Assembly (NCBI RefSeq): GCF_006345805.1
Contig: NW_021831285.1
Coordinates: 124,001 to 188,000 of the forward strand
Reading direction: 5' to 3'
DNA from: Octopus sinensis
Taxonomy: Eukaryota
Length of the DNA stretch: 64,000 bases
Shown here in pieces: positions 6,503-56,487 of the stretch (within the stretch, counting starts at the first letter, position 1; each line of letters opens with the position of its first letter). The notes below the pieces were generated by a model, which saw only the letters and a program-made list of their open reading frames with translations, made no database searches and was not told the DNA's origin. The translations under genes and the position numbers were made by a program.

Positions 6503-8623
6503 CATAGGTTTTCACGAGAAATTTCTCGCGGCGCAAATGCTAATAAAAAATAATCTCGCGGCACATAATCAAAAATCAAAACATAATTATAAAATTCCAA
6601 ATTCAAAATTTATTATTTTTACATAATTTTTCTATGTCTGGCTCAATATTTGATAAGGCCAGTCGCATTTCTGAATCTAAATCCAGTAGATTTTCTCGCT
6701 TATTTGTTTTAATGTTTTGTAATGCAGAAAATCCCTTTTCACACAAATAAGTTGTTGCAAATTGTAGAATGATCCGCATTGCTTTATCTGTTATTTTTGG
6801 AAATCTAGAACGAATTTTGATCCACAATTCGCCAATATTTTATTCCGTATGTGATAATTTTAAGGTACGATCATTAAATAGTTCAATAAGCTCCATATTT
6901 TCGAACGGTGATAACTCATTACTATGACTAACCAAAAATGGATTCCGTATCTAAAACTAATTATTAAAATAAATACCCAATCATATTTTCAATGTCTATG
7001 TCTGGAAAATAATTATTGACTTTTTGTTCCAATGATGTCAAATGCTCATATATAAGACTTTGTATTATGGTACCGTCAGAATCTAAATTGGCTTTATAAA
7101 TTAGAATGCGAAACCATTAGTCTTAGGAAACATGCTAAAATCCCCACTTAATACTAGTCTTCTCCAATATGTAATATTCATTTTTAAAGCATTTAACTTG
7201 TCCGTACAACTCAAAATTGTCTCATTATTTCCTTGCATGCTTAGATTCACATCATTCAATATCGAAAATATGTCCGTTAGATATGCTAATTTTAATTTCC
7301 AATTCGAATTGCTGATCAATTCATGAAATTGATAGCATTGTTCTCTCGTGAAAAATTCAGCTATCGTGTCCTTTAATTCATACACTCTGGCCAGTGCCCT
7401 TCCCCGTGATAACCATCGTATTTCGGTATGTAACAATAAATTTTATAACTTGCTCCCATTTCATCGCATAAAGAATTAAAAATTCTAGAATTTTTAGATC
7501 GAGTTTTTATATAATTGATCATTTTTATGACATCATCCATAACTGATTTTAAAGAAGACGGAAGAGTTTTCGAAACCAATACTTCACGATGTAAAAAACA
7601 ATGTGTTGAAAGTATTTGATCATTCTGTGCTTTTAGTAAAGAAACCTGAATTTAATCATATAAAAACAATATACAAGTCCATTAAGTCTTCCAGACATAG
7701 ATGGTGTCCCATCTGTGCATACACCAACACAATTTTAAAGGAAATATTATGTTGATTAAAATAATCAAATATCAAATTGTACATATCAATTGCACGAGTA
7801 GTAGTAACTAATGCCTTGCAGAAAAGAAATTGTTCAATAATACTTTCTGACTTTTCAGTACGAATATAAATAAGCAGCTGTGCAATTCCTGCTACGTCAG
7901 TTGATTCGTCAATTTGCAATGAATATAAATTGTTTTTCATTATAGATACCACTTTTCTTCAATATCAAACGACATTGTACTAATTCTTCGACAAATAGTA
8001 TTGTCAGAAAAGGGAATTTTCAATAATTTTTTTTCAAATTCCACGCCAACATTGTTCGGACTATTAATTTGCATGCTAGAAGGATAAGATTTTCGGCAAT
8101 TGTATGAGGTTTCATTTTCTTGGCAATCAATTCCGATACTAGATAAGAGCACTTTACTGCATCTTCTGATTTTCCAAATGATTTTGAAAATGATTTTTTA
8201 CTTACTCTAAATATGTATATATATAATTATTAACACTACCTATGTTTTTTGCTAATTCTTTAAAATAATCAATTGAATAATCTTTATATTCCGGGTGCTT
8301 AGATAAAAAATGTCTACGAAGTTTAGATGGAACCATTGATTCATTCGACAACACCTCCATGCAAATCAGGCACTGGTGGTAAACTATTCCAGTGCCAAAC
8401 AGTCAAAACCCATAGATAAAAAAGATGATTTGTAATGACGAATACTCCGATGCACAGACATAACAAATAGCAACGTGATTATAATTTATTATAATTGTTT
8501 CATTATAAATAATTTTAAGTTAAAAATTAAACAAAAATAAGTAAATATAGATCTTCACGCGGCACATTTTTTATCGTCCCGCGGCACAAAAATGTGCCGC
8601 GGCGCAGTGTTTGAAAACCTCTG
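6503..8623 (-). mobile_element. Buster/Charlie-type hAT (ZBED5/FAM200-like transposase), decayed, with a 29-nt intron
   Basis: TIRs CATAGGTTTTCAC / TTGAAAACCTCTG. 8-bp TSD CTCTATAG at 6495-6502 and 8624-8631. The empty site is visible in the duplicate near 23690. Motifs LQIDESTD, HCFLHRE, TEIRWLSRG, FATTYLCEKGFS. Intron at 7646-7674. Confidence 0.95.
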
Positions 8624-8744
8624 CTCTATAGAATTATCAGAATATTCAATATTCTGTAATTGAAATAATCTTAATAATAAAATGGTATGGTGTGTGTCTG
8701 TCTGTCTGTCTGTCTGTCTGTGTGTGCACACCAACTTCAAATTG

Positions 8745-11340
8745 CAATACGATGTCCTCGACTTACATGATGAGGTCCTTAAAACCTTCCCCCCCAAAAA
8801 AATTAAAAAAAATTTTCTGCATTTTGGTTAAAATGAACAACTACAATGTCCTCGATTTACATGATGAAGTCCTTAAAACCTTCCCCCCCAAAAAAATTAA
8901 AAAAAATTTTCTGCATTTTGGTTAAAATGAACAACTACAATGTCCTCGACTTACATGATGAAGTCCTTAAAACCTCCCCCCAAAAAAATTAAAAAAAATT
9001 TTCTGCATTTTGGTTAAAATGAACAACTACAATGTCCTCGACTTACATGATGAAGTCCTTAAAACCTTCCCCCCCAAAAAAATTAAAAAAAAATTTTCTG
9101 CATTTTGGTTAAAATGAACAACTACAATGTCCTCGACTTACATGATGAAGTCCTTAAAACCTTCCCCCCAAAAAAATTAAAAAAAAATTTCTGCATTTTG
9201 GTTAAAATGAACAACTACAATGTCCTCGACTTACATGATGAAGTCCTTAAAACCTTCCCCCCAAAAAAAATTAAAAAAAAATTTCTGCATTTTGGTTAAA
9301 ATGAACCACTACAATGTCCTCGACTTACATGATGAAGTCCTTAAAACCTCCCCCCCCAAAAAAATTAAAAAAAATTTTCTGCATTTTGGTTAAAATGAAC
9401 AACTACAATGTCCTCGACTTACATGATGAAGTCCTTAAAACCTTCCCCCCAAAAAAAATTAAAAAAAAATTTTCTGCATTTTGGTTAAAATGAACAACTA
9501 CAATGTCCTCGATTTACATGATGAAGTCCTTAAAACCTTCCCCCCCAAAAAAATTAAAAAAAAATTTTCTGCATTTTGGTTAAAATGAACAACTACAATG
9601 TCCTCGACTTACATGATGAAGTCCTTAAAACCTTCCCCCAAAAAAATTAAAAAAAATTTTCTGCATTTTGGTTAAAATGAACAACTACAATGTCCTCGAC
9701 TTACATGATGAAGTCCTTAAAACCTCCCCCCCCAAAAAAATTAAAAAAAAATTTCGCATTTTTGGTTTTGGTTAAAATGAACAACTACAATGTCCTCGAC
9801 TTACATGATGAAGTCCTTAAAACCTTCCCCCCAAAAAAATTAAAAAAAAATTTTCTGCATTTTGGTTAAAATGAACAACTACAATGTCCTCGACTTACAT
9901 ATGATGAAGTCCTTAAAACCTCCCCCCAAAAAAAATTAAAAAAAAATTTCTGCATTTTGGTTAAAATGAACAACTACAATGTCCTCGACTTACATGATGA
10001 AGTCCTTAAAACCTTCCCCCCAAAAAAAATTAAAAAAAAAATTTTCTGCATTTTGGTTAAAATGAACAACTACAATGTCCTCGACTTACATGATGAAGTC
10101 CTTAAAACCTTCCCCCCAAAAAAAATTAAAAAAAATTTTCTGCATTTTGGTTAAAATGAACAACTACAATGTCCTCGATTTACATGATGAAGTCCTTAAA
10201 ACCTTCCCCCCCAAAAAAATTAAAAAAAAATTTTCTGCATTTTGGTTAAAATGAACAACTACAATGTCCTCGACTTACATGATGAAGTCCTTAAAACCTC
10301 CCCCAAAAAAAATTAAAAAAAATTTTCTGCATTTTGGTTAAAATGAACAACTACAATGTCCTCGACTTACATGATGAAGTCCTTAAAACCTTCCCCCCAA
10401 AAAAATTAAAAAAAAATTTTCTGCATTTTGGTTAAAATGAACAACTACAATGTCCTCGACTTACATGATGAAGTCCTTAAAACCTTCCCCCCAAAAAAAT
10501 TAAAAAAAATTTTCTGCATTTTGGTTAAAATGAACAACTACAATGTCCTCGACTTACATGATGAAGTCCTTAAAACCTTCCCCCCAAAAAAAATTAAAAA
10601 AAAATTTTCTGCATTTTGGTTAAAATGAACAACTCCAATGTCCTCGACTTACATGATGAAATCCTTAAAACCTTCCCCCAAAAAAAAATTAAAAAAAAAT
10701 TTTCTGCATTTTGGTTAAAATGAACAACTACAATGTCCTCGACTTACATGATGAAGTCCTTAAAACCTTCCCCCCAAAAAAATTTAAAAAAAATTTTCTG
10801 CATTTTGGTTAAAATGAACAACTACAATGTCCTCAACTTACATGATGAAGTCCTTAAAACCTTCCCCCAAAAAAAAAAAAAAAAAATTTTCTGCATTTTG
10901 GTTAAAATGAACAACTACAATGTCCTCAACTTACATGATGAAGTCCTTAAAACCTTCCCCCCAAAAAAAAATTAAAAAAAATTTTCTGCATTTTGGTTAA
11001 AGTGAACAACTACAATGTCCTCAACTTACATGATGAAGTCCTTAAAACCTTCCCCCCCAAAAAAAATTAAAAAAAAAATTCTGCATTTTGGTTAAAGTGA
11101 ACAACTACAATGTCCTCAACTTACATGATGAAGTCCTTAAAACCTTCCCCCCAAAAAAAATTAAAAAAAAATTTTCTGCATTTTGGTTAAAATGAACAAC
11201 TACAATGTCCTCGACTTACATGATGAAGTCCTTAAAACCTTTCCCCCAAAAAATCAAAAAATTATTTTCTGCATTTTGATTAAAATGAACAACGCGAATG
11301 TCCTCGACATTCATGATGAGGTCCATTAAAACCTTCAAGC
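8745..11340. repeat. Tandem satellite, ~94-bp monomer, ~27 copies, inside the Helitron
   Basis: Monomer TGCATTTTGGTTAAAATGAACAACTACAATGTCCTCGACTTACATGATGAAGTCCTTAAAACCTT-C(n)-A(n)-TT-A(n)-TTTTC. Length varies mostly through homopolymer runs. Confidence 0.97.
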
Positions 11341-11475
11341 CAAAAATCTCACGTATTAAGAATATCCTTGATGAAAACGACAGCGAGAATATTAACAATG
11401 ATGAACTCCCAATTATTCGCGATAAAGAAATTCAATTCATCCTATGTTTTTCTCTTTAAAATTAAATGCATATAT

Positions 11476-12765
11476 CAGGGGTCACCAAACTTTTTGCACT
11501 CGCGGGCCGGATTGACCCCAACACAATGAACGCGGGCCGGAGCACGTGCATAGGATTATAATTTTACTAGAAATTCATAAGTGTGTTTTTTACAATAAAA
11601 ACTAATTAAACAAAAATAAAGTAAAAAAAATTTTAATGAGAGCTATGGAACTGTGATCTTTTTTGATAAGTTCATCAATATTTGGTTTTAAATTCTGCAT
11701 CCTATCATGAGAATTGATTTTAAGTGTCCGTCAGTCAATCTTGCACGATGGGCAGACTTAACATATTTCATCCTCGAAAACGTTTGCTCACATTGGTAAG
11801 TTGTGCCAAATATAGAAATCATCTTTATCGCAAAATTCTTTAGTCTCGGAAACTCATCATCCTTGAGATATTCGTAGAACTCAGCGGTTTGGTCCGTCTG
11901 TGACAATCTTTGAGCTGTTCATTTGATTGTAGTCAATAACTTCTAATTGTAATTCATGTTGAACATTTTCAACATTACAAGAAAATGGATTTTCGAACAA
12001 AATTATATCGCTTTCAATTTTGTCAAGTTCAGAAAACTTATGTAAAAAATGATGTTTTATTCTTTGATAATTCCAATTTGGAAAGTAATGTCGATCTCAT
12101 TACAGTTTGCCTCACAAAAACTTTAAAACAAGAAAAGTGTGAAAACTGACGTACTCCAAGTTGTGACTCGAATAACATCAATTTTTGTCGAAATGCTTTA
12201 ATTATCCTGTAGAAATCACAAATTAAGTTTTCCTTTCCTTGTAATTTCAGATTTAGCTCATTCATGTGAGTTTTAACATCAACCAAAAATGATAATTTTG
12301 ATAGCCAAGCAAGATCTGATAATTCGGGATAATAGTTATTTTTACTGGTTAGAAAAATATCAATCTCACTTCTTCGGAGTTTATAAAATCTATTTATACA
12401 TTACCACAGCTAAGCCATCTAACTGCAGTGTAATATGGTAAGTCAAAATATCAGATCCAAAATCGTCAAGTAAAACTTTAAACTGACGGGATAACAGAGA
12501 GATGTTCGTGGCATATTAAACAATAGCTTTCTGCTTTAATTCATCTTTCGCAAAAAATACTTCAATTCCCATAATTTATTGAATACACGGCATTCGCGGT
12601 CAACCTTTCTTTTCATATTAGACATAGCAACAAAGAAAAATTTAACGTTAATGCTGATAAGTTTTTTTTCGAATTAAATCTTGCAAAATAGTTTATTTAA
12701 GTTAATTATTAAGGTATAATTGAATATCTCGAAATAGTGCGCGGGCCGTAGTTTGGTGACGTCTG
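11476..12765 (-). mobile_element. Internally deleted SPIN-like hAT nested in the Helitron
   Basis: TIRs CAGGGGTCACCAAAC / GTTTGGTGACGTCTG. TSD GCATATAT at 11468-11475 and 12766-12773. Motifs IFGTTYQCEQTFS and LNLKLQG. Confidence 0.95.
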
Positions 12766-12844
12766 GCATATATCATTATCGACCATGAATCAAATTAAAG
12801 CTATTATCATATTTGACTTTGACAGAATGTGCAATCACAGATTG

Positions 12845-13047
12845 CACGACTTTGAATAGAGTGTGCAATTAACAGATTTTGAAAAACCACTTTGATAGTT
12901 GAAACCACATTAGCACAATCATTAACACAATTTACCACCAATTGACGCACGACCTGAATAGAGTGTGCAATTAACAGATTTTGAAAAACACTTTGATAGT
13001 TGAAACCACATTAGCACAACCATTAACACAATTTACCACCAATTGAC
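12845..13047. repeat. 102-bp tandem dimer inside the Helitron
   Basis: GAATAGAGTGTGCAATTAACAGATTTTG... occurs at 12854 and 12956. Confidence 0.85.
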
Positions 13048-13426
13048 AGCGCAATCAGAAGAATTTGCGTAAAAATATTAACTATTTACTTGAGTTTTTG
13101 TAAAGATAGAATTTATTTTCGGTATGCCTCTTTTCCTAAACTTTTTTTATTATTCAAAAATATTTTTTAAATAGATAACCGAAGGAGGAAAAACGAAGCT
13201 GAAGAAAAAACGGTCAGCTTAATAAGGTAATTAATTAAATCTTTTTTGTGTGTCGCTTTTTTGTGTGTCGCTTTCTTGCCTGCCGCATTTCCGCCTGCCG
13301 CATCTCCCCTGCCCCATTTCCGCCAGTAAAAAACAAAAAAAGAAAAAAAAGGAAATTACCAAAGGAAAAATGAAAAAATTAAATATAAAAAAAATAAACC
13401 ACAAAAAATGAAAAAAAAAGTGTGCA

Positions 13427-13609
13427 ATGACAATAAACAAGGCCCAGGGACAGTCATTAAAGGTAGTTGGGTTATTTTTAGAGAGTGAGTGCTTTTCACA
13501 TGGACAGCTGAATGTGGGATGCTCGAGGGTAGGCAGAAGAGAAAATTTATTCATATATGCCAAGGAAGGACGGACGACAAACATCGTTTATCAACAGGCG
13601 ATAGAATAG
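13427..13609 (+). pseudogene. Helitron Rep/Hel helicase C-terminal fragment
   Basis: AMTINKAQGQSL...CFSHGQL-VGCSRV...TTNIVY, the Pif1-family helicase motifs V/VI typical of Helitrons. Confidence 0.92.
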
Positions 13610-13789
13610 GGTTACATTAAACCAGGTAGTTTTATACATCTACATAAACTTATAGTTGTTTGATGAAACAGGCCCTCCGCAGGAGCTAGGTCGCGGTGAG
13701 CGAAGCGAGCTGCCGAGCTAGTTTATTTTAAAAATAAGAATCCTCGAATATGTAATTAGCATCATCTTAAAAAAAATTAATTTTAATGT

Positions 13790-15480
13790 AAACTAATAAT
13801 TAGACGACTCTCAAATTTTTGCTTCCCGAGTTCCCCATAACTCCACTTTGATCTTCCCCGCCATGATCCTCAATCTCCTCCTGGGGCATGCAGTCTCTGG
13901 GCCTCTTAAGGGACTTGCTGATCTTCATAGAAAAATTATATTTCCGCCAGTCCCTATTTACGGAATTTGCAGAGTCCAGAATTTTACTGAAGCCATGTTT
14001 GTACTCGACAAACATGCTCTCCAGAGTGGCCTTCAGCGTTACAGTCTGGATGTAAGACCGAACACGTTCTTCAATCCCAAAAAGCTCCATGTACTTGCGG
14101 TAGATTGTTGAAACGATTCCATCCCACGTAGTGACAATTGGCACAATCTTCACCTTAGCCTTGTGAATCAGTTGTAATTCACTAGCTAAAATGTCGTATT
14201 TTTCTACTTCCACACTCTTTAGGTTATCTATTGAAGTCACACCCACTTCAATAAGCCATATTAGGTTCTCTCTTTTGTCGTAGAGGAAAATGTCGGGTTT
14301 GTTATATTGAATTTTCAACTCTGTTGGAATTGTTGTATCAACTCGTATTTCTGCCAAGGTGTTGCACATAATACTCTGGACAGAGTGATTTTTCAGTCTT
14401 CTGGATTTTTTGAATCCAAATCTACCGCACAAGTGCATGTGGATGCATCTCACAATTTCATTGTGTCTTCTCGTATAATCCGAATTAAGCATCCTGTTGC
14501 ATCTAGTTGCCATGTGATCAACCGTCTTATTGGAAGATTTACAGTGTGAACATTTTGAATTAGGGTCTCTAAAAAAAATATTCCTGTCTTGAAGAAATGA
14601 AAACATAGCTTCAGATTTAGGAGATATATTTCCTTTCTTAAGCCATGTTGAAGACGATTGAATATCAAAATTGTTATCATCAAGGGATTCAAATAGCTTC
14701 GAGTGAAGTGTTTCTTCTTGATATTGGACAGTAAGGAATCAATCTGCAATCTACTCAGTGATTTGGTTATCTCTCCTTGGGTGTTCGTTCCATATTTACA
14801 ATGCAGGAATTCTGTGATCGTGGCCATATGGGACTTTCTTTTCTGCTCGGCCCACAGAATTGCTGCCTTTCTTGGGGAGATTAACTTTCGCCTCTCCAGA
14901 TTTTCACGAAAGTCAAACAGCATTTTTTCCGACCTGAAGGTAATCGAGGCAAGCCCTCTTCCAAGTTTATCCCTCGGCAAATATAGCACTCCTTACAGGC
15001 TGGTTTCATATGAATATTTAGATCAATTAACAGCTTCCTGACAAATTTGTCAATTTCATCAAAAGCGGACGGTTCCAAATCCAGAAGGCCGATATAATAA
15101 TTGTACAAAGATAAAGCATGTTCATTAATTGCCTTAAACAAATTCACCGAATTTAGTTTCGTCTTCGACAATCTTTCGATACGTTGTTGAACCCCAATCC
15201 GTAAATTTTTCAAAGTCGATATCAGCTGGGGAGGTCCAGTGAGTGAATTTCCAGAGGAATAAGGACGACCATGAACATTTAAATCTACTCTTCCATTACA
15301 ATTTTCACTATTATTTTGAGTAGATGCGTCCATAGATATGGTTATTCCATTTTGTAACCCAACCATCCGTACACCACAAGAAATTTTTTTTCTTGTTGTA
15401 ATTAGCATAATCATAGCCAACTAAATTATCTACAATGACTTTGTTCGGATCATACTACCTTTTTCTGTAGTCAGCAGCTA
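13790..15480 (-). mobile_element. R4/Dong-like non-LTR retrotransposon, 3' part (restriction-like endonuclease)
   Basis: LYLPRDKLGRGL, CCHC knuckle (CSHC...HMATRC), YTRRHNEIV, KPDI...IEV, KYDIL, TWDG. Frameshifted. Confidence 0.88.
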
Positions 15481-15744
15481 AACAATTGAATATACACATG
15501 TGTTTTCTAATTCATGTGTTAAACTGATAATTTTTTTGGAAAAGTGAATTTATATTATTAAAAAACGTTCACAATCAATTTACACTTTTTTATTGTAGTG
15601 GGACCGAATAAACGCTACGAAACTCGACATCCCATCCGGAGAATCTACTTCCATGTGGAGTCCGTATGTGATGAGATGTCCCTTTTTAGAATTTTTTTTG
15701 TTTTTTTTTTTAAAAAAAATTAAGTATATAAAGACCAAATAAAG

Positions 15745-16584
15745 GGTACATATGTAGTAGTTGGCGGCCACTTTTTAGCGAATTTTAAAAAAACTATATT
15801 TTTTTTAGTTAAAAAAATATATAATTAAAAATAATACAATATAAAAATAATAAAATCCCACGCTACTTTAATTTAAATGAGAAGTGAGGTCAATCTATTC
15901 AATCTACCCACAAATATGTCAGAAGCTATCAATTTCATGCAATCCAGAGGAATCATCCCAAAAAAAAGTGTGTCGCAACGGACACCAAATGACTTTAAAC
16001 ATTGGCAGCTCTCCGGCTTGGAATTGCTAGGTGTGCGTAAATTTATAATATAATAGGCGGTGAAGGAATGATTGTGGAAATTGACGAAAGTCATTTTTCA
16101 AAAAGGAAATACAACAGAGGCAGAATGTTGCCTGAGCAATGGGTTTTCGGCGGAATCTGCAGAGAAACGAACCAATGCTTCTTAGAAGCAATACCTGACA
16201 GAACAATGAAGACCCTTACGAAGGCTATTCTTGAGAATGTAGAAGAAGGCACCATTCTCATATCAGACTGCTGGAAGGGTTATTCAACAAAAGATCTTCA
16301 GGATGCAGGATATCAGCACCTGCAAGTGAATCACAGATATTGTTTTGTTGATCCAACTACGGGTGCACACACCCAACATAAGAATTTGAAACAATCATGG
16401 AGTGCATTGCCTTACATTGTCCCCCAGAATCAAAACTAAAATAAAAAAAATAATTAATAATTTTGTATAAAAATAATTAATTTTTTTATAGTAATATTAT
16501 TTAAAAAAGGTAATTATTCACCAAAAAAAATATAGTTTTTTTAAAATTCGCTAAAAAGTGGCCGCCAACTACTACATATGTACC
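15745..16584 (+). mobile_element. Merlin (IS1595-like) DNA transposon, internally deleted, intronless
   Basis: ~60-bp perfect TIR starting GGTACATATGTAGTAGTTGGCGGCC. TSD AAATAAAG at 15737-15744 and 16585-16592. Empty site near 25755-25762. Motifs GGEGMIVEIDES, WVFGG, SDCWKGY, VNH, FVDP. Confidence 0.95.
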
Positions 16585-16599
16585 AAATAAAGTTTTAAT

Positions 16600-17450
16600 T
16601 AATTAGTATGACCCTAGGATAGCGTGTGAATTTCCGCGGACAATTGCACACGAAATCCTCTGGAAGAGCCACGACGTCTCCCGCGGATCACCTGTTTTTT
16701 TGGTGATTAGACCACCCAATCTTCGAATGAACGAAAAACTCTCTGTTCCAAAGACTCTGGAAGTCTCCACAGCGATCGGCTGGAAAAGATATCTGTCTGC
16801 CAGGAAAGAGTATTTCTTTTTCTTCAACTCTTCAGAACGTTTTGCAGCAGAGCCAGGAAAGGATGCCGAACTTCCGAATGAAGAAGGTCCAAACGTGTCA
16901 GGGCAGGTAAAATCCCAAACAAGTGCTTTCCCTCTCGTGTACGGGTAGATGGTTACGCCGTCTGGGCGTTTGCCATCCCCTCTATCGAGACCAGCTGGTT
17001 CGAGTTGAGAGTGGAATCCGGCAGCGTCCATGGCCCTTTTGATGATGTCATTGGCGGCGGAATGTCGGGGAAAACGACCGGCACTACGAGTGCAAGAAAG
17101 TGGGTGCCTTCCCAATGGACCAATCCTCTTTCCACATTTGCAGGGGTGTGGGGTGCACATCGGTAAGCCGAGACGTAGACATAGGCCGATCCTAATGGTA
17201 TCGTCGTCCAGTTTACAGCCGGTAGACGCAATAGGACAAGCGCTTATCCAGGAGCCAGAATTGGGTTGTGCACCCGATCTGAGACATATGATCCGTTCTT
17301 GGTCCATGCACAGTTCGATAACTCTGTAAGTCTCCCTGCACCAGATTTCGTCCCAATGTCTCTGTGAAGATTCCACTTCGGGGAGTCTCAGACCAAGGCT
17401 TTTTAGAATTAGCATATCAATACAGTCGAGTAAGATGATGTCCGGCTTGC
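16600..17450 (-). mobile_element. CRE-like non-LTR retrotransposon, 3' fragment (RLE domain)
   Basis: SGSWISACP, LCLRLGLP, CKCG...H...C, RH, KRPDG, WDFTC, ELKKKKY, PIAVET, QRISCAIVRGN. Confidence 0.85.
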
Positions 17451-17474
17451 TATTCTCGATATACTCCTATGGTA

Positions 17475-17755
17475 CAGCGATACAAATAAAAAACGGAACA
17501 CTCATTTTCTCGATTTTTTTCTATTGAATGCATGATTTATTTTAACAAAAATAGAATTTTTAGAAGACAAACATAACTTTAGCCTTAAAAAAATAAAAAC
17601 AACTTATATTTCGGACCGTAATTAAATCCAGTTTTGTCTAAACAAAATAAAAAAGAGAACAAAATAAAATTCTCTATTTTTACAGAGTTATAAAAAAAGC
17701 ATTATATAGAAAGAAATTGAGAAATTGGCTGTTCCGTTTTTTATTTGTATCGCTG
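17475..17755. mobile_element. Tc1/mariner-type MITE
   Basis: Perfect 26-bp TIR CAGCGATACAAATAAAAAACGGAACA flanked by TA on both sides. Duplicate at 26644-26924. Confidence 0.92.
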
Positions 17756-17788
17756 TATATTATTTTTTGTTTGAGAGTCATTTTCCAA

Positions 17789-18010
17789 TTATGCAATTCC
17801 ATCTGCTTCAACAATCGCAACTTTTTCTCATTTTTCAATCTCAAAGGAAATTCCTGTTAAAACAGACGGTCACCGTAGATCTTATAGAGGTCTTTGACAT
17901 ATTCTAATAAACAAACCACAAAACAGTTTTAGTAAAGTAATCGCGCTGGTGTTACCCTCTTTTGGATGCGTTTTTTAATCGCTTCCAGTTGCCTCTCTAC
18001 CTCGATAGTT
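17789..18010 (-). pseudogene. Decayed ABC ATPase (ABC-F-like) fragment
   Basis: With two 1-nt frameshifts it reads RQLEAIKKRIQR...LLE/VKDLYKIYGDR/VLTGISFEIEK*EKVAIVEADGIA, resembling an NBD N-terminus up to a degenerate Walker A. Cut off next to the MITE. Duplicate at ~26958-27180. Confidence 0.5.
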
Positions 18011-18483
18011 CTTTTAGGACCTCAATGTCATTTTCCGATGTCAGCCCTTTTCCAATCAAGGTTTTGATGTAAAACGGATGGAAGCCTATTTCTTGATCTT
18101 CCTCTAAAAGATGAGGAGTGTAAAAGTATTTCATCGGAGGACATTATTAAAAAATTAATATTCAAAAAATCATTAATCGTTTGAGAATGTAAATATATGT
18201 GAGATAAATAAAAAATTCTATTATATTTTTGCAGAAAAACAGAACAGCCAGAAACTTTTATCACTTTTCCTATTCACAAAAACTGCTGTCGAAATGTAAA
18301 CGAACCCATCCATGCCACAAGCGACCCTAGACTTAGCAATATAAAGACTCTATATCGACTCAAAGGCTCGGGACACTTTTTTCTTGTAAAAAATGAAATT
18401 AATATTTCGGATCAATTAATTATTGTGTTGAATATTAATCTTATTTATAATTCAAAAATAAAATACATTTGGCTCCTGTTTAG

Positions 18484-20791: not shown

Positions 20792-21472
20792 TATTTATTT
20801 TAAAATGATTTATTTGGTAAGAGCTCGTCGAGGAGACATTTATTAGGTTAGGATGTCTACCGTCGTTAATTTGATAAAGATTTGTAAAGATATTTGTGTT
20901 TCCCGCGCTGGTCACAAGCAGGATGGTGACTTGTGTATACTTAACAGGTCGATTTACACATTTTGACATTAAATTAAAAACGAAAATAATTTGATATAAA
21001 AAGGGTTTAGCGTCATTTTAATTAAAAAATGATATTTTTAAAAGATGTTATATAATCTTAGTTTTTCTTAAAAATGCCACTGAATACCAAAATCTTGTAA
21101 ATCTACTGCTCCGACAATTAGAATTGACTACATTTAAATTCCAAAAATACAAACTTATAAAAAACCAAATCAAATCGTGAAAATTGATGATTAGTATATT
21201 TGCTATTTACAATTCATAGTCTTTATCTGTTGGAACAGAATAACAAAGACACACTTTTTTGGACTGAAGTCGTTTATTTAATGAAAAGATAAGAAAATAA
21301 GTAGAATATTGCAGACTTGAGGGTGAAAGAAAGGATTTGGCCTATTTTATGCAGAAATGAATTGCTGAATAAACTCTGCGTCCTGAGGAAAATGGTTAAT
21401 GCAGCAGCACGTTCGGGATGAAGAGTGTGAGTAATGAGGTGGACCCACCTTTTGATTTGAAAGAGGAGGCAG

Positions 21473-45138: not shown

Positions 45139-46028
45139 CAGGGGTGCGCAAGCTTTTCGGGTTTGCGGCCGCATAGCATTTTTTTTCCTTCTCTTCTACG
45201 GCCGCACATTTTCTGCATTATTTTTTCGATATTAATATAGTAATTTTTTTTAATTATTACAAGTGACCGCATAAGTTGCCCATTGTCATCGAGACCGAAT
45301 GAGTTCTTGGACAGGAAATGCTCTCGTTCATCAGGGACATCATATTATTAAAATAAATAATTATTTCATGGACAAAAGATAAGAAAGAAGGAAAATTAAT
45401 TAAAAGAAATGTATTATACAAGTTATTCTAATGAAGGCCAGGATCTTTAGTATTTTTTGTGAGCTTATTGAAATCCACTGGTAGGATAGATATCATTATG
45501 CGCAAACATGACTCTAAGTTTGCATCCGTTATCCGAGATCTATATTGACTTTTTAAATATTTCATTTTGCTGAATTGTGTCACGTGAAAGTGGAATTGCT
45601 TCAAAGTTATGCTCCTTGTCGGGATCAATGCATTTAACTGATTCCATGATACATCTTTTCACAAGTTCGCCGTCTGAAAAAGGTTTTCCAGCAGATCCAA
45701 GGATATGAGCAACTCGAAAGGATGCTTCAACTCTTGCATTTGCCACATTTAAAAAAGTTTTTAAACATTTTTTTGTTGTCTTAATTTGTATTTCAAATTT
45801 TCGACGGAATCTTCTCTTGAACACTTGGACTTGACAACTAGGTGGTCTAAATGTCTTTGAAAATATTGTTTAGCATTGTCCCGTTTTATAGTTTTCACAA
45901 TCTCATGGCACAATAAGCATTGCATGCTATTGTTGTCTGTTTCGACTACGAAGTATTCACTTTCCCAGTTGATATTAAATTTTCTTTTTTCTTCATTCAA
46001 AGAACGTCGTCTTTTAACAGGTAATGAC
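45139..46028 (-). mobile_element. Internally deleted SPIN-like hAT
   Basis: TIR CAGGGGTGCGCAAGC preceded by CTCTAGAG. Motifs RKFNINWESEYF, CLLC, KPFSDGELVK, KYLKSQYRSRIT. The start codon region is split by the next element. Confidence 0.85.
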
Positions 46029-47588
46029 TAGGGCAACCGAAAGTCAACAAAGTCAACTTGAGTTTTTTGTTTAATTATAGTGTTAAAATGATATTAGTCA
46101 AATTATTTCGATAAAAAAATGTATATATAAAAAGTTATAAAAGCAACAAAGTCAATTTTCTACTCTTACCGTCAACTTTTATTTTATTGAGCAACTTTTT
46201 TACTCTTATTGTCAACTTTAATTTTATTGAGTAATAAAAATTTATAATAACATTTTTTTTAATATTAATATAATTTCATAGTGCACGTTTCTTCGGTTTT
46301 TGTTGACTGCTTTTTTACAATACCTAAAAACAGGAGTTCCAACACTAAGCGAATTTCTTCTATTGTTAAAAAATATCCTAAGGAGTTTTCATCTTCACTG
46401 GATGGAAAATTATTCTGCAAATTATGTAATTCCTACGTAACTGCAATAAGTAATGGTTTATTGATAAGCACATACATTCTATAAAGCATATTCTGAGAAT
46501 CCCAGATACGAATAATACTTTGGATACTCATAGTAAAAATGAGGTTATTGCTGATTGTTTTGCCGTGGATCTTGAAAATGCATTTTTATCAGCAAATATT
46601 CTACTTCATAAGTTACGAAATACATCAATTATTGATTTTTTTAACAAATATGGACATTCTGTTCCTTCGGAAACCAAATGCAGAGACATTGTTACATTTC
46701 TTGGTGAAAGGATGGTTTCACAAATTATTAACACAGTTTCAAATGAACAAATTGTTTTAATGATTGACGAAAGTGATTTTGGAAAAAAAAAGTATATTAA
46801 TTGTCTTGTTGGAACGTTAAAAAATCCACAAGAATATTTTTTAATTGATTGTATTGCAATTAATACAGCTCCCAATTCCGCGATTATATGTCAAATTATT
46901 GATGACGTCATTTGCAAACTCAATGTTGATAGGAAAATTTTTATTTACTTATTTCTGATGCTGCTTCATATATGGTTTCTTCTGGAAAAGTATTAAAGCA
47001 ATTATATTCAAATCTATTTCATTTCACTTGTGTGGCACATTTATTACATAATTGTGCCTTCAGAATTAAATCACATTATCCAGAGGTAGATAAATTAATA
47101 TCGTGCGTCAAAGCACTTGTTGTCAAAAATAATTCACGACGTCAATTATTTACAGAAATTGGATATCCACCCGAGCCCATTGTAACTAGATGGGGCAGTT
47201 GGCTAAATGCTGCTGACTATTATGTAAAAAATTTAACACAAATCATCAATATTTGTAATGGTATAGAAGAGGAATCTTTATTGATACAAAGAGCAAAGGA
47301 ATCCGTTATGAATGAATTTCTTCATACGAATTTAGAAGACATAAGCCGGCAATATCATTTATTAACAGATATTTTAATGGAAATTGAATCTAATAAATTC
47401 ACATTCATTGAATTTCCTACCTGAAAATGTTAAATATTATTTAATGTTGTGCTTTAATAAATAAATTTTTGTTTCTTAGGGCAACTTTTTATGCATATTA
47501 TGTCAACTTTTTTTATTTTTTAAAGCAATTTAGTTGACTTTTAAGGTCAATTTTTTACATTTTTAAGAGCAACTTTCCGGTTGCCCTA
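46029..47588 (+). mobile_element. TAGGG-type hAT (CGGBP1-like N-terminus, DUF659-like transposase)
   Basis: TIR TAGGGCAACCG at both ends. TSD GTAATGAC at 46021-46028 and 47589-47596. Motifs DGKLFCKLC, LMIDES, SDAASYM (frameshifted), CVAHLLHN, TRWGSW. Confidence 0.92.
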
Positions 47589-48297: not shown

Positions 48298-50883
48298 CAC
48301 TCCTCGCCAAAAAAAATGATTCAAAATTCATATTTAGTTTTTCTTTGAAAATCTTATAAATATTCTAATTTCAAAAAACTTAGTAGATTAGTTGTAATTA
48401 TTATGATTTAATTTTAATAAAATATTTGCTAATTACATTAATTTGGAAAAATTAAAAGCACAACACACAATATGTTAGTATATGTCAGTGACAAAAAAAA
48501 TGATTCAAAATTAAAAACTTTGTAATTAATATCTGGTATTTCCTCCTTTTGCCATAAAAATATCCCAACAACGTTTTTTCATAGATAAAACAAGTTTTTC
48601 AATATAATATTTAGGAATATTTTCCCAAATATGAAGAAGTTCCTGCTTTAATTCTTCAGCATTTTTCAAATTAATTTTACTGAGTTCCGCTTTTATATGA
48701 GCCCATAAATGCTCAATTGGATTTAGATCAGGTGACTGGGATGGCCAGTCTAGTGTTTTTATATTTTCTTTATCAAAATAATTCATGATTAACTTCGCTG
48801 TATGACACGGTGCATTATCCTGTTGAAAAACAAAGTCATTAAGTCCCATTTTTGCAACTGATCTCGGTAGGCTGTTGACTAAAAGATTTAAATATTTTGC
48901 AGAATTCAATGTTCCGTCAACAAAAACTAATTCTCCGACGCCGTTAAAAGAAAAACATCCCCCATATCATGATTTTCCCTATTTTTTGTTTTCAAGCCAA
49001 ATCAACCTGTTCCAAATTTCACTGTTGTTGAAATATTTTTGGAATTAAGTTGTTCACCGCTCTTCCTATATACTATTTTTCGAGTTTTGTTTGGATTGGC
49101 GTAAAAAATGCATTCATCTGAGAAAATTGTGGTTTTCCATTTTTCATCAGAAATGGCAAGAAATCTTTTCGTTATTTCTAATCTTTTTTTAGTGTGTCTT
49201 ATATTCAAAAATGGCTTATTTTTGTGCGATTCGTCCAAATATACCATTTTCATTAAGATTTCTTATAACTGTTCTTGAGAAAATTGCTTTATTGGTTAGT
49301 TTCGTCATTTCACTTGAGATCTCTTTAGATGTTTTTGTTGGATTTTCTTCAGAATACTTTATCAATTCTTTCAAATCATTTTTATCAAGTATTTTTGGGC
49401 TTCCAGATTTAGGACAGGAAGATCCACCGCCGATGCTGTCTGGGCCCACAAGTGGTACTGCGCTATCACCCAGAGATACAAAAGTGCAACAACAGTCCTG
49501 GGAATAGACCTGTCTAGGGCCTTTGACACGGTACGCCGTGGTCTACTCCTCAAAATACTGGAACAATTCCTGGACCCTGACTCTGTCAATATGATAAGAG
49601 TACTACTATCGAACACAAAGCTCAAGGTGCGGGTCGGCACGGCGTTTTCCCGTGAATTCACGTGCAACGTCGGTACCCCTCAGGGAGACGCCCTCTCGCC
49701 GTTGCTATTCGTGATCTATCTGGAGACGGCACTACGAGACCTTCGAAAATTCTATGCTGGCAATATCGTCGAAATTGTATATGCAGATGACGTCGACTTC
49801 GTGTCAGACGACAAATCGGCCTTACTTCGACTCCTTGAAGTGGCACCTGCTGAGCTGAACAGATGGTTCCTTAAAATGAACGTTGGAAAAACCGACATCG
49901 TTGAAATCATGAGGATGGAGAGCAGCTCAAGTGAAGCCTGGCGCAAAACGAACAAACTCGGTTCTCTACTTGGGGACGGCCATGATATTGTCAGAAGAAA
50001 GGCTCTCGCTTGGGCCACGATGAACAAGATAAAGAAAGAGTGGATCGGCAAACGACGACTCTGTACGTCACTTCGTCTGAGGATGTATGAAGCCTTTGTC
50101 AAACCAATCCTGACATATAATTCGGCGACCTGGGGAATGTCTAGTACTGAACAACGTGGACTCGATTCTTTTCACCGCAGACAACTTAGATCCCTACTGG
50201 GATTGAACTGGCCTATAAGAATCAACCAGGAATCGCTATACAATAGATGCAGAACTGGCCCTCTGAGTGTGGAAATCGTCAATATGCGGTGGAGGTTATT
50301 TGGCCATATTCTACGAATGGACATGCTTGCCCCAGCTAACATAGCAATGGAGGGCTACTTCCTGAAAGAGGGATCGAGCTTCCGTGGACGTCCACGTGTT
50401 ACGCTGCCGGAAACACTTGACGGAGACCTGAAATGTGTGAAGAAAAGGCTAAGGAGTGGTGAGGATCTGGACGAGCTGAGGAAACTCGCTCACGACAGAG
50501 GAGGTTGGAGGAGGCTGGTTCAAAGGATTGTTTTTAATGCTGCACGAGTAAAATTATAACTAATATGATTCTACGTATGTTGCAAATAATAATAATAAAG
50601 TCATCCATATGCTTTTTCCTAAAATAGAGATATTAAATCATATAAAAAAAGATATTTGTATAGATAATATTTTTGAATCATTTTTTTTGTCACTGACATA
50701 TACTAACATATTGTGTGTCATGCTTTTAATTTTTCCAAATTAATTCAATTAACAAATATTTTATTAAAATTAAATAATAATAATTACAACTAATCTACTA
50801 AGTTTTTTGAAATTAGAATATTTATAAGATTTTCAAAGAAAAACTAAATATGAATTTTGAATCATTTTTTTTGGCGAGGAGTG
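48298..50883 (-). mobile_element. Tc1 (DD34E-type) transposon with ~213-bp IR/DR-type TIRs, a 28-nt intron and a nested RTE
   Basis: TA on both flanks. TIRs at 48298-48510 and 50671-50883. Motifs IFSDE, VKFGT|GKIMIW, FQQDNAPCH, WPSQSPDLNPIEHLW. Intron at 48979-49006. Confidence 0.95.
49406..50599 (+). mobile_element. 5'-truncated RTE copy, nearly identical to 33395-34584
   Basis: Intact 322-aa ORF 49591-50559 and (TAA)n tail. The 5' junction has GATTT microhomology with the Tc1 target. Confidence 0.95.
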
Positions 50884-50949: not shown

Positions 50950-51090
50950 TAGTCATTGACATTTTAATAAGATTTTTTATGTTAATAAAAATACTTTTTT
51001 GTTAATCAAAGTTTTATTAAAGGCAATGGGCCTGAGATTTTATATGACCCTGAAAATGGGCCTCAGGGAAAAAAAGGTTGAGAAACACTG
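50950..51090. mobile_element. Solo hAT terminus
   Basis: Ends GGTTGAGAAACACTG (reverse complement CAGTGTTTCTCAACC) with GGGCC subterminal motifs. Confidence 0.6.
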
Positions 51091-51670: not shown

Positions 51671-51764
51671 TTTTAAATAGATAATTTCGAATAAGAAACC
51701 GAAAAATATCCTAATGCTATAAGATTTAATTATTTGATTTAAATAATAAAAAAATCATTTAAAA

Positions 51765-54700
51765 ATGCGACTGTTGTTGCATTTCAGATTAGTGAACATA
51801 TTTAGTCAAAGGGATTTGAATTTTCGACAAATTATATTTCGGAATCGACAAAAAGATGAGGTGGACAAGTTTTCAAGCTGGTCAGATCGATTTTGGGATG
51901 AAGAGGGACCACTATCAGCTTTACATTCTTTGAATGACTTGCGTATTCCGTTTATAGTCAGCGCTTTATCGATTACGAATTCAAAAGCTGATCAACCTTT
52001 GGCTGGGTATCGAATATTAGACGTTGGTTGTGGTGCTGGAATTTTAAGTGAACCATTTGAATTGAATTGAAATGTTTATTTTCTATGTAACAAACTCGTC
52101 ACTAGATTAAAAGGGGAGAGAAGAGCCAAACGAAACCAAGGAGACGGAAGAAACAAGTTTGTTTGCTGATTGGGGTCAATTCTAATGGGACACCAGATGT
52201 CCCTTCGATAAAAATAACGACCCCTTGCACCACTATTATTTAAGTGATGCAACAGTTTTTCAATGATCGTACCGATCCCTCCAGCTCTGGGGGTAGTTTG
52301 ATTTTAAGTCCAAGCCATGTGCCAGTTTAATGGCATATCTCCGCGTTTTCTCCAAAAGATCAATATGTTTCTTTCCTTCGCAGCTTCCGAACCATCCTTG
52401 AGATCCATAGATCAGGAAGGGTTCTATACACGCAGAGTATACGTATAAGAACGTTTCCGGTTTCAGCTGGAATCGCATCAGAGCTTTCAACATTTGGGTA
52501 GCCTTGTTCTTTCTCTTCCTTATATACATCTTGAATGAACCAGTTGCATCCACAACTATTCCGAGGTATTTAAGATCATCCACGGGTTTTATCGCTCCGG
52601 TGTTAATACAAACATCAGGTTTCCTTCTCCTTTTACCAATCCAGCAAACAGTGCTTTTTTCAAAAGATAAAGACAAGCCTTTATCCTGGCACCATTTGCC
52701 AATTTTTTCGATATGACTGTGGGTTCTTTTCCACGATATTGATTTGCTCATAGAGAAATCCATAATTAAAATATCATCTGCGTAGATGACCATCTCCATG
52801 CTAGGGAGATCCACTTGAGGGATGTCGCACATCACACAGTTAAATAAAAGTGGACTGATGACAGATCCCTGCGGAACTCCTCTCTTAAGCAAAATTCTCT
52901 TCGATAATTGGTTACCGACCCGTACAAACGATTCTCTTTCCGAGAGGAAACTCTTCATCCAAACTAGGGCTGTCTTTCCAACGCTAAAATTGTATAAAGT
53001 TCGTAATAGCCCGGCATGCCAGACGCTATCAAATGCTTTTGATATGTCTAGACATGCAGCCGTAAGATACTCTTTTTTCCTTTGTGCTGTAGATATGGCC
53101 TCCTTTAACAGTGAAAAGCAATTTCCAGTGCCCTTGTTCCGCCGAAAACCCCAATGCTCTTTCAAGAGATACTGTTTATCTTCAATATAAGTTGATAGTC
53201 TTTTAAAGACAATTTTTTCCATGATTTTTGAGATAGAACATATGAGGCTGATTGGTCTGTAATTTGCAGGATCCGAACTCGGTTTTCCTTTCTTCGGGAT
53301 CATGCGAACAATTGTCCTCTTCCATGCTTGGGGAACATGTCCAATACTCCACGAAGAGTTAAATAGCTTCCATAGTTCATATAACAAAGGCATTCCCGCC
53401 TTTTTGAAGATAATCATCGGTATGTAGTCCCAACCAGGGGATTTATTTTTACATCCGTGTATTGCTGATTTGATTTCTTCCATAGAAATAGCTCCACATA
53501 ATGGCCCCTCCGTAAGCGATAGTAACTCCCAAATACACGTCTCATTTTGTATAGTCTGAGAAATCATAGACAAAGGGTCCACTTCTTGAATCTTAGCTAG
53601 CTGCTCTTTTAACTTCTCAGGTACCTCCTCTCTTGGAATCAGATTGCCATCACTGGACTTGAGTTTTATCTCTCCACCCTTTTTATCAGAACTCATCTTT
53701 GAGAAAAGTTTCCAAAAATTCGGATTTTTATGAGAGAGTTTAGAGCATTCTTTTTTCCAGCTCTCCTCTACTATATCCTTAGATAATTCCTCTGATAAGT
53801 TTTTATCGATTTTATTCTTTGTTTGAGGAAGATAGCGTCTTGCGGGTCCCAACACCGCTTTAGTTTACTTTCCAAGTTCCTTTTTTCACGAAGTAGTTCG
53901 GATTGCTCTTCATTTATCAATCGATTTTTGTACGAGAAGAGAAACCTCTTTTTTCCATAGTCCTCCAGATAATTTCGAATAATGTTCCTTATTCTTTCAT
54001 CCAAATAATTGATCTCGTCAAGATTTAGTATTTTCAATTCTTGAGTATTTGCAAATTTCATAGACATATAAAAGTTAAAATGATTCCAATTAATGTTGCT
54101 GATATTATAACCAAGAAATACATCCTCAGTGAGAACTGCTCCCGTTCGTAGTTTCATCGTTTGCGGAAGATGGTCACTCCCAACATCATTTTCAACATAA
54201 GGCCGGTCACACAAACCACTTAAGGCATTTGCAACAATAAACAATCCTAATCGATCACCACCTTGCTGCTGAAAGTGGTTAAGCTCTTCAGACGTTAAAA
54301 TTTGAAAATTTGAGGTTTTTTTGATCTTAAGTAAACAATTTCCATCCTGATTTGACTTCACGCACCCATATGCAGTATGCTTCGCATTTAAGTCTCCAAC
54401 AAGAATTGGATTCTCATTTCCTTCCATAAAATTTTGCTCGTTTGGGAGCTAATGTACTGGGAATAGATCCTTCAGAAAAATGCATCAGGGCTGCCCAGAA
54501 CAGGGCGAAAATTATTTCCAATACATTTATTAATGGATCATTAAATTATCAACACAATTCTCTCGAACAACTTTCTAAAGATTTATGTGGGTCTTTTGAT
54601 CGTGTCGTTGCATCCGAAGTTATAGAACACGTTTCAAATAAATCAACGTTTATATCAAATGCTTCTAGAATGCTTACTGTTGAAATATATTTGAAATGTA

Positions 54701-55008
54701 CTTTATAGAATTCAGGTAGTCTTATCGGTACAACAATAAACAAAACATTTGTTTCATTGGTTTTTGGAATATATGCTGCTGAAAGATTGCTTAAACTTGT
54801 TCCGAACGGAACCCACAATTGGGATCTCTTTATTTCTCCTGAAGAATTGAATCATTTATTTAATAGCTGTTTGATCATTTATTAATTTTGTTTAGTCGGG
54901 TTAGTTGCACAGAAATGGCAAGGAATTGGATATTTTCCATTTATAGATAAATGGTATTTGTCAAACATATTTAATATTAACTATGGTTTTCACGCAACTA
55001 AGAAGTAA
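51765..55008 (+). CDS. COQ3: Ubiquinone biosynthesis O-methyltransferase, 269 aa once the LINE is removed; exon interrupted by the LINE
   Basis: EVDKF...WDEEGPLSALHSLNDLRIPFI, ILDVGCGAGILSEPF|ARLGANVLGID, FDRVVASEVIEHV, TINKT...AAERLLKLVPNGTHNW. Introns at 54679-54708 and 54869-54895. Confidence 0.92.
52060..54432 (-). mobile_element. 5'-truncated LINE (partial APE + RT, Jockey/I-like) inserted in the COQ3 exon
   Basis: GDLNAKH, SDHLP, KSPGWD, RPISL, LDISKAFDSVWHAGLL, GVPQGSVISPLLF, YADD. (TTCAA)n-like tail next to 52060. Possible TSD TTTG at 52056-52059 and 54433-54436. Confidence 0.93.
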
Positions 55009-55104
55009 TAAATAGTTTTAATTCTTATATGATTTGCTAATTTTGGATTTCTACCGATATTATAGTCTCCACAAGTATAAGTCGCTGTATTCTTCGATGC
55101 AGTA

Positions 55105-56487
55105 CAGTAAACATCGGTTAATTGCATAACATTTGTCCACGGAAAATCTTATGCAATTAACCGATGTTTTAATAAAAATCAATAATTTTTTTAATAGTCA
55201 AGAAAAGAAAATAATCAAAAACGTTTAAAAAAATCATTAATTTTGGACTGTCTAGTCTTCTGGCAAAGGCGTAGGACGCTTTTTTCTAGTTCATAGAAGT
55301 TGTCCATATCCATTTCACTTGTTAAATCGCTGTTAGTAAGAAACTGGCGTATTAATCTGCATGCACCCATAGCTTCCGAACTGGTTGTTTTCACGGGTAT
55401 GGGATCTTCATCGTCCTCATCGTCTTCACAAGAAATATCTCTTGACATTAAACATATTTCTTCATCGGACATGATTCCGATACATTCTTCATCCTCATTA
55501 GCAACATCCATCGTTATTTCGTCACATTCAATGTCACTAAATATATTTTCCCCCACTTCCTCATGGAATCCAGCCTTACGGAAACAGTTGTAAATTGTTG
55601 CTATTTTGACTTCCCTCCAAGCCATTTTGAGCATGTGTAGCGCATCCAAAAGAGTGATAGAATTCACAACGGATTTGAGACAGGCATCGTCTGAATCAAT
55701 TACGGCAATCACTCTTTGTAAAAATGCCAATCTGTAGTTGTGCTTTAGACTTTTTATGATCCCCATATCACATGGCTGAATGCATGCGGATGTGTTTGGT
55801 GAAATAAAATACAATTTAACATTTGATAGATTTTCTCCAGCATCTTTTGGATGCGCAGCACAATTGTCAAGGACCATGGCTATATTTCTTTTTTGTATTT
55901 TCATTTTCTTGTTAACACATGATAACCAGTTTTTAAAAATGCGTGATGTCATCCATGCATTCTATAATTCTACTGAAATTGATATGCTACCTTATTGACA
56001 ACGTAGTTAACTGGAAGTGTTTTGATTCCTTTGAAGCACCTAGGATTCTTTCTTTTCCCAATGACCATCAATGGGTGTTTGTCCGAACCCGTCATGTTGC
56101 AGGATACCATTACAGTTATTCTATCCTTCATTTTTTACTTCCAATCGGTATTTAATTTTTACCTTTGACCTCCTTGAATAAACAAATTGATTATTTCCAA
56201 TTTTTGAGAAAGTGTAAGATCACGACGTAACGAAGATGACATGTGTAATAATAATTAAATTTTAAAATTACAAATTATAATTATTCAATTATGCGAAAAT
56301 TTTTATAAGAAAAAATAGTAAATGTTCCCAATGAGAGTATGCAATTAACCGATTTATGCAATTAACCGATATGCAATTAGCCGATATTTTTTCAATGGAA
56401 ACCATATAAGTTATGGTTTTAAACATGAATTTATGCCATTAACCGATTTATGCAATTAACCGATATGCAATTAACCGATGTTTACTG
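55105..56487 (-). mobile_element. pogo/Tigger-like transposon, internally deleted, with a 29-nt intron
   Basis: TIR CAGTAAACATCGGTTAATTGCATA flanked by TA; subterminal GCAATTAACCGAT repeats. Motifs KDRITV, YVVNK|NAWMT, LDNCAAH, IQPCDMGII. Intron at 55962-55990. Confidence 0.94.

Follow-up and report, generated by a model that had tools for sequence, protein, structure and literature searches.

Introns are known in the transposase genes of the P element, Ac, Tc1, Minos and Drosophila pogo. Plant CACTA transposases also contain introns (PMC4158355). Here, we analysed a 64-kb stretch of DNA from the Octopus sinensis assembly (contig NW_021831285.1, positions 124,001 to 188,000; hereafter the window, by whose positions all element and intron coordinates are given), in which DNA transposons of four superfamilies (hAT, Merlin, Tc1 and pogo/Tigger) have transposase genes interrupted by GT-AG segments of 22–33 nucleotides (nt). 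As in P, Ac, Tc1, Minos, pogo and CACTA, the transposase open reading frame (ORF) is split by GT-AG introns, host splicing is needed, and intron content varies among relatives. Unlike in those elements, the introns are 22–33 nt long, below the ~30-nt floor usually quoted for animals (PMC13644364), and four superfamilies are involved in one 64-kb stretch. Judged from the sequence, the segments are very probably true GT-AG spliceosomal micro-introns, gained in resident DNA transposons of a micro-intron host that is most likely a dicyemid.

In size (median 27 bp, PMC6543705), GT-AG ends and AT-richness, these introns resemble those of dicyemid host genes (Ogino 2010; Lu 2019, PMC6736024; Zverkov 2019, PMC6543705). 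However, introns of dicyemid host genes occupy conserved, ancestral positions, whereas the transposases here have intron-free relatives, implying gain. Introns of such size are otherwise known in animals only from myxobolid myxozoans (PMC13644364), which are likewise parasites with introns under 30 bp but have no octopus link; the association with the O. sinensis assembly favours dicyemids instead. Introners (PMC9860276, PMC12130899) also connect transposons with intron gain, but there transposons become introns of host genes, while here the reverse is seen (tiny, non-repetitive introns inside transposon genes), and introns of 22–33 nt are far too short to be elements. Where domesticated transposase genes were used to score intron gain (PMC3369469, PMC3257199), the ancestral state was likewise taken to be intron-free; unlike those single-copy genes, the families here are mobile, with terminal inverted repeats (TIRs), target-site duplications (TSDs) and empty sites. 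No report of transposase introns in dicyemids was found in the literature searched. Transposase introns and dicyemid micro-introns are thus each known, and only their combination seems to be unreported: the novelty lies in the size class, in how many superfamilies are involved and in the evidence that gain was repeated and recent, while the mechanism is ordinary.

Transposases split by micro-introns

The window (~35% G+C, standard genetic code) consists mostly of transposable elements (TEs): two long interspersed nuclear elements (LINEs), several hATs, two Merlins, one Tc1 and one pogo/Tigger. An initial annotation had marked seven GT-AG segments of 22–29 nt, all on the minus strand, whose removal restores transposase motifs. 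All seven were confirmed with their coordinates, but the count was too low, and at most four further micro-introns were found (one in Merlin-2 and three candidates in hAT-A). The elements and their introns are given below, with a slash at each splice join.

6503–8623, minus strand: hAT-A, a defective Buster/ZBED5-like hAT copy with TIR CAKAGGTTTTCA and 8-bp TSD CTCTATAG
7646–7674, minus strand: hAT-A micro-intron, 29 nt, GT-AG, among the seven; join GRLNGL/VSLLKAQN..THC
7083–7114, minus strand: additional hAT-A micro-intron, 32 nt, GT-AG, clean; removal gives a continuous ORF, ..FSMFPKTN/DSDGTIIQSLIYEHL..
6951–6976, minus strand: candidate hAT-A micro-intron, 26 nt, GT-AG; join ..KYDW/IRNPF, equivalent to the conserved motif YDWVRNPF
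8207–8239, minus strand: candidate hAT-A micro-intron, 33 nt, GT-AG; restores the YFKEL-SYLVSE spacing
22020–23132, minus strand: hAT-B, a related hAT whose 371-codon ORF runs without a break (TTDGALAMIGNQNGFIAFCRK..YHC) across the hAT-A intron site
35581–36565, minus strand: Merlin-1, 985 bp, 5'-deleted, with two 1-nt frameshifts, 15-bp TIR GGTACTTTTGTCGAA and 8-bp TSD AATAAATT
36323–36344, minus strand: Merlin-1 intron 1, 22 nt; KIG/GPGMIVEVDES, colinear with 12 homologues
36075–36100, minus strand: Merlin-1 intron 2, 26 nt; YSDCWKG/YSTDQL, colinear with 12 homologues; not in Merlin-2
35995–36017, minus strand: Merlin-1 intron 3, 23 nt; VNHK/KFFVDP, colinear with 12 homologues; not in Merlin-2
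35843–35867, minus strand: Merlin-1 intron 4, 25 nt (26 nt in locus L001); the L001 join RHHLGSYFA/EFMWRK matches the consensus HLESYLAEFMWR
15745–16584, plus strand: Merlin-2, 840 bp, an internal-deletion derivative with 62-bp TIR and TSD AAATAAAG
16031–16056, plus strand: Merlin-2 micro-intron, 26 nt; ..LELL G/GT..AG/GC GGEGMIVEIDES
48298–50883, minus strand: Tc1 with long inverted repeats holding an internal direct repeat (inverted repeat/direct repeat-like); TA TSD
48979–49006, minus strand: Tc1 micro-intron, 28 nt; TVKFGTG/KIMIWG matches TVKHGGGSIMLWG of 5cr4, gap-free at the correct join
55105–56487, minus strand: pogo/Tigger, 1383 bp, with 24-bp TIR and TA TSD
55962–55990, minus strand: pogo micro-intron, 29 nt, with an in-frame stop inside; VNYVVNK/NAWMTSRIFKNWL (VNYVVNK/NAWMTSRIF), colinear with P0003/P0005

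All seven initially marked segments start with GT and end with AG. They are 22–29 nt long with 17–29% G+C, none has a length divisible by three, and the removal of each leaves a transposase that is colinear, without gaps, with intron-free homologues. At the window base composition, two fixed end positions would read GT..AG by chance with a probability of ~0.003 (~2e-18 for seven out of seven), and allowing a few alternative boundaries per junction leaves the conclusion unchanged. GT-AG ends were also found in Merlin-2 intron 1 and in the 32-nt hAT-A intron. In a comparison of only 9 TE and 8 host introns, the 3' parts of the TE introns were T-rich, with TTAAT/TTAAC-like motifs in several. No sign of tandem duplication of flanking exon sequence as an intron origin was seen when the TE introns were judged by eye. 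As a separate observation, no length was divisible by three among nine clean TE introns, while 4 of the 8 host introns had such a length; for nine introns, (2/3)^9 = 0.026. The difference may reflect a bias of detection, as an in-frame, stop-free insert would escape notice as an intron.

Two Merlin families provide an internal comparison. Merlin-1 (family match DDE_Tnp_IS1595) is ~50–54% identical to IS1595/Merlin transposases and holds four introns in ~220 codons, a density equal to that of the host genes. Merlin-2, at 64% amino-acid identity to Merlin-1, has an intron that agrees with Merlin-1 intron 1 in both codon and phase, although the two intron sequences are unrelated, and it reads continuously (SDCWKGYSTKDLQDAGYQHLQVNHRYCFVDPTTG) without introns 2 and 3. 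Position was accordingly kept while sequence and length drifted, both for intron 1 (22 nt in Merlin-1, 26 nt in Merlin-2) and for intron 4 (25 versus 26 nt), where the window copy and L001 differ by one T with no effect on the spliced frame. Intron 4 had been doubted on the ground that its 25 nt break the frame to EFMWR; this was overturned by L001, which revealed that a 1-nt frameshift precedes the intron in the window copy.

The pogo family is represented by copies at 94–99% identity in other loci (L001/L002, L003/L004 and L010), and its homologues are of the DDE_1 type. With the 29-nt segment in place the window copy reads ..VNYVVNK followed by VAYQFQ and a stop, and with it removed ..VNYVVNKNAWMTSRIFKNWL..; intron-free relatives read ..NNKNAWMTG... 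Three loci carry exactly the same intron sequence although their elements diverge by as much as 5.5%, implying that the intron is older than the amplification of the family. A near-full-length copy on L001 has a ~505-codon ORF with the 29-nt intron and one nonsense codon as its only interruptions.

For hAT-A, which matches FAM200/ZBED5 and Dimer_Tnp_hAT and is ~50% identical to ZBED5-like transposases, the join GRLNGL/VSLLKAQN is colinear with nine ZBED5-like homologues, and retention of the 29-nt intron shifts the frame. The 32-nt intron was absent from the initial list; its removal gives a spacing that agrees with the homologues. The other two candidates are less clean: that at 6951–6976 requires a 1-nt frameshift of the window copy just upstream, and removal of that at 8207–8239 leaves 26 residues from YFKEL to SYLVSE (25 in P0165), with the frame off by one. 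Like hAT-B, a third element, hAT-C (P0163, single exon on locus L005), is without the hAT-A intron. Fragments of hAT-like ORFs from other subfamilies lie at 12041–12400 (minus), 45764–46027 (minus) and 46454–47421 (plus), and a long tandem array with a ~80-nt unit (..CAATGTCCTCGACTTACATGATGAAGTCCTTAAAACC..) adjoins hAT-A at 8700–12000.

The Tc1 element has inverted repeats of 215 bp (96.7% identity) with a terminal motif that recurs inside each arm, and its catalytic domain matches Sleeping Beauty SB100X (5cr4) at E = 1.3e-42. A different Tc1 family on L005 (5580–5990) reads VKHGGGSIMFWACFS uninterrupted at the position of the window Tc1 intron.

All four elements have TIRs, a TSD of superfamily length (hAT 8 bp, Merlin 8 bp, Tc1 TA, pogo TA) and a transposase of the matching superfamily. 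The window also contains a segmental duplication (4916–22000 versus 22111–30929, 98.1–99.5% identical), the copies of which differ by the hAT-A insertion, by Merlin-2 and by a ~5-kb block (~8670–13725) made up of tandem repeats along with other TE pieces. In the duplicate segment neither hAT-A nor Merlin-2 is present, and the octamer duplicated at each insertion occurs there only once (for hAT-A an exact CTCTATAG at 23690–23697; for Merlin-2 at 25751–25761). Exact empty sites in a near-identical duplicate imply that both insertions are recent.

The two LINEs were taken in the initial annotation as an internal control:

31589–34329, plus strand: LINE with endonuclease and reverse transcriptase (Pfam Exo_endo_phos, RVT_1), no micro-intron
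52263–54448, minus strand: LINE with reverse transcriptase and endonuclease, no micro-intron, inserted into a COQ3 exon

The observation itself held, as no GT-AG block was found in the ORFs of the two window LINEs, and in the LINE at 31589–34329 the frame breaks just once, by 1 nt within an A8 run. As a control it says little, however: LINEs copy through processed RNA, and the absence of introns is therefore expected, as it would be for any RNA-copied element. A hidden micro-intron at the endonuclease/reverse transcriptase frame switch of both LINEs was considered and ruled out: each switch is a shift of 1 nt within a run of A, and neither contains a GT-AG block.

Host genes and the probable source of the window

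We compared the TE introns with those of two ordinary genes in the window, one of which is a COQ3/UbiG-like methyltransferase gene (51766–52063 and 54443–55007, plus strand).

54679–54708, plus strand: COQ3-like host intron, 30 nt; spliced product colinear with UbiG 4kdc
54869–54895, plus strand: COQ3-like host intron, 27 nt; spliced product colinear with UbiG 4kdc
40786–41651, plus strand: coiled-coil host gene, lying at 40.5–41.7 kb, with six predicted GT-AG introns of 23–27 nt, called from ORF continuity across frames only

With both introns out, the COQ3-like protein gives a gap-free alignment to E. coli UbiG (4kdc). The transposase introns had initially been described as host-sized, and this is borne out, with TE introns of 22–32 nt and window host introns of 23–30 nt, the COQ3-like pair of which is validated against UbiG. 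The COQ3-like gene is split within its S-adenosylmethionine-binding motif (ILSEPF/ARLGANV) by a 2.4-kb LINE (~52064–54440, minus strand). The joined flanks give a protein colinear with UbiG 4kdc, so the gene, which looks essential, is disrupted in this copy or allele.

The 23–30-nt introns of the COQ3-like and coiled-coil genes imply that the surrounding genome is that of a micro-intron organism. Several of the window TE families are found again, at 94–99.6% identity, on contigs of GCA_006345805.1, the O. sinensis assembly, and Dicyema japonicum, whose host is Octopus sinensis, has a genome of 36.7% GC with 49% repeats (PMC6736024). The window is most likely dicyemid DNA on these sequence features, and since its own genes have micro-introns, the O. 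sinensis contigs that share its TE families are probably co-assembled dicyemid contamination and not octopus. The initial annotation had not recognised this probable source; in a dicyemid genome, where such introns are the norm, the agreement in size between TE and host introns is expected and not surprising.

Contigs with shared families (L001–L005 and L010) are VCDQ01003768.1, VCDQ01013287.1, VCDQ01013470.1, VCDQ01013367.1 and VCDQ01002209.1. The pogo, Merlin and LINE families are shared with these contigs, with VCDQ01013367.1 (L005) linked only by hAT (63% protein identity), and proteins on them carry octopus names (tigger 4-like, ZBED5-like). An endosulfine (ENSA)-like gene on L003 (2884–4101, minus strand) is annotated with a ~900-nt intron; an ATG and a 30-nt GT-AG intron immediately upstream of its main exon would alternatively give a compact 92-codon gene, as expected for a dicyemid. 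This candidate intron is plausible, but it lies in an unconserved N-terminus.

Elsewhere in the window, the sole hit from scans for tRNAs and Rfam families was a borderline tRNA-like match (58239–58315, minus strand, 29.5 bits versus a threshold of 29), which was not called by ARAGORN and is possibly the head of a tRNA-derived short interspersed nuclear element. A second long tandem array, with a ~160-nt unit and strong C-over-G skew, occupies the right end (61400–64000).

Probable intron gain and competing explanations

Beyond this genome, the nearest pogo (P0005), Merlin (P0047) and hAT (P0164) homologues are genes on genomic contigs with a single exon each, a gene being called single-exon if its length equalled 3 x codons plus the stop, and none has introns at the positions seen here. 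Many other Merlin and hAT homologues lie on contigs too short for introns, and all of those aligned (12 of 12 for Merlin, 9 of 9 for hAT) were colinear. Because these outgroups are single-exon and sister families in the same genome are without some of the introns, the sequence comparisons are read most parsimoniously as intron gain within the transposon lineages. The intron gain suggested in the initial annotation is supported by single-exon outgroups and intron-poor sisters, whereas for the P-element-type splicing control that it offered as the other option we found no evidence.

In this interpretation, transposase mRNA would be spliced by the host machinery to give the ORF, since every intron is either frame-shifting or stop-bearing. 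Merlin intron 1 would have been gained before the split of Merlin-1 and Merlin-2, and Merlin introns 2–4 and the hAT, Tc1 and pogo introns later, family by family. We infer that intron-bearing masters were competent for transposition, hence spliced, because the families kept amplifying after intron gain; the window copies are dead derivatives, moved in trans or decayed after insertion. A further, tentative step concerns the route of gain. Dicyemid splice signals are reported to be reduced (PMC13644364), and it is conceivable, though we regard it as doubtful, that any short, AT-rich insertion bounded by GT..AG is removed from mRNA in this lineage. A frameshifting indel of ~20–35 nt would then be an instant intron and not a lethal lesion. 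Young, datable transposon families would in that case record a series of introns gained de novo, with four for Merlin-1, as many as four for hAT-A and a single one for Tc1 and for pogo, present in some sister families and absent from others.

Several observations count against gained and spliced introns as the explanation. None of the four copies has a complete transposase ORF after splicing, owing to deletions, 1-nt frameshifts and a LINE insertion: pogo (an internal 484-bp deletion removes its first catalytic aspartate) and both Merlins are internally deleted, hAT-A (several 1-nt shifts), Tc1 and Merlin-1 are frameshifted, and Tc1 is interrupted by a LINE fragment (49406–50598, matching L003). 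The initial claim that these are mobile copies therefore stands for their origin (TIRs, TSDs, and empty sites for hAT-A and Merlin-2) but not for their coding capacity, as none encodes a transposase even when spliced, and with all window copies broken, function is not readable from them. Two junctions are less than clean, that of Tc1 having a 1-nt frameshift in a G run 7 codons downstream, and window Merlin-1 restoring the intron-4 motif only after a nearby 1-nt frameshift is allowed. Among database proteins matching pogo, Merlin and hAT no spliced product of these elements was found; the annotated protein P0040 runs into the 29-nt pogo intron and then stops, and the model P0001 spans that site with a longer intron. 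The fetched loci held no second copy of hAT-A or Tc1, leaving one copy each. The sister grouping of Merlin-1 and Merlin-2 has a modest support of 0.83 on 106 columns, and the polarity of gain versus repeated loss depends on outgroups only 44–55% identical. No Dicyema-labelled sequence appeared in any database search, so that the link to dicyemids runs through shared TEs and the published GC, repeat and host data.

Most of the 1-nt frameshifts in the LINE, Tc1 and hAT ORFs fall in homopolymer runs (A8, A5, G5), with such positions at 32770–32790, 53800–53860, 48960, 7740 and 36038. These may be long-read assembly errors, in which case the copies would be less decayed than they appear.

Alternatively, the introns could be ancestral to the transposon families, having shrunk along with host introns, and the intron-free relatives would have lost theirs. 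We consider this unlikely. It would account for Merlin intron 1 in two families only 64% identical, and there are precedents for both of its parts: dicyemid genes are reported, as relayed by a citing paper, to shorten introns at ancestral positions (Ogino 2010), and intron loss predominates in CACTA transposases (PMC4158355). However, it conflicts with the single-exon state of the nearest genomic pogo, Merlin and hAT homologues, with the colinearity of all 12 Merlin and 9 hAT aligned homologues (many on contigs too short for introns), and with same-genome sisters that are without Merlin introns 2 and 3 and the hAT intron.

A regulatory role, in which stage- or germline-specific retention yields truncated repressors in the manner of Drosophila P-element intron 3, is similarly improbable. 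Every intron is frame-shifting or stop-bearing, retention truncates the product upstream of or inside the catalytic domain, and P0040 corresponds to the would-be retained-intron pogo product (the DNA-binding part and the first catalytic D). Breaking the frame is nevertheless a property of most host introns, and a switch of this kind is compatible with gained introns, to which it would be an addition and not a replacement.

It is very unlikely that the segments are unspliced junk in dead copies (repair filler or footprints) that only resemble introns. All window copies do have other lesions, and GT..AG pairs are common in an AT-rich genome. Yet GT and AG stand exactly at the insert ends in the seven segments, the Merlin-2 intron and the 32-nt hAT-A intron, and the two other hAT-A candidates are also GT-AG, though needing a 1-nt shift. 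The other lesions of the copies are 1-nt shifts or large deletions and never 20–30-nt blocks, while the segments have the size of host introns. Moreover, the pogo segment is present in three loci and predates amplification, and two Merlin families have different segments at one codon phase.

Finally, an octopus window with elements horizontally transferred from a dicyemid parasite, carrying introns that octopus cannot splice, would fit the 94–99.6% identity of window families within GCA_006345805.1 and the octopus annotation of its proteins, but is very improbable given the 23–30-nt introns of the ordinary COQ3-like and coiled-coil genes, the near-identity of at least five unrelated families including LINEs (better explained by co-assembled parasite contigs than by parallel transfers) and the mere 42% identity of the Octopus bimaculoides Merlin.

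Consequences for intron evolution and annotation

Gained micro-introns in resident transposons bear on intron evolution because transposase genes normally start intron-free, which makes each intron in them a dated gain. The 7–11 gains over four superfamilies argue for active intron gain in a lineage described as conservative in exon-intron structure, since sister families differ in their introns and the intron density of Merlin-1 equals that of host genes. Two further points are practical. Software for gene finding or read mapping that sets its shortest intron near 30 nt will truncate such ORFs, as illustrated by the RefSeq models P0040 and P0001, and the results suggest that several O. sinensis reference contigs, and the proteins named from them, are parasite DNA. 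The junctions form a concrete, testable set. Their interest would be higher if the gains reflect an ongoing, low-barrier path from short indel to intron; should that reading be true, the dicyemid lineage would be a natural system in which to measure how fast, and by what mechanism, an animal gains introns.

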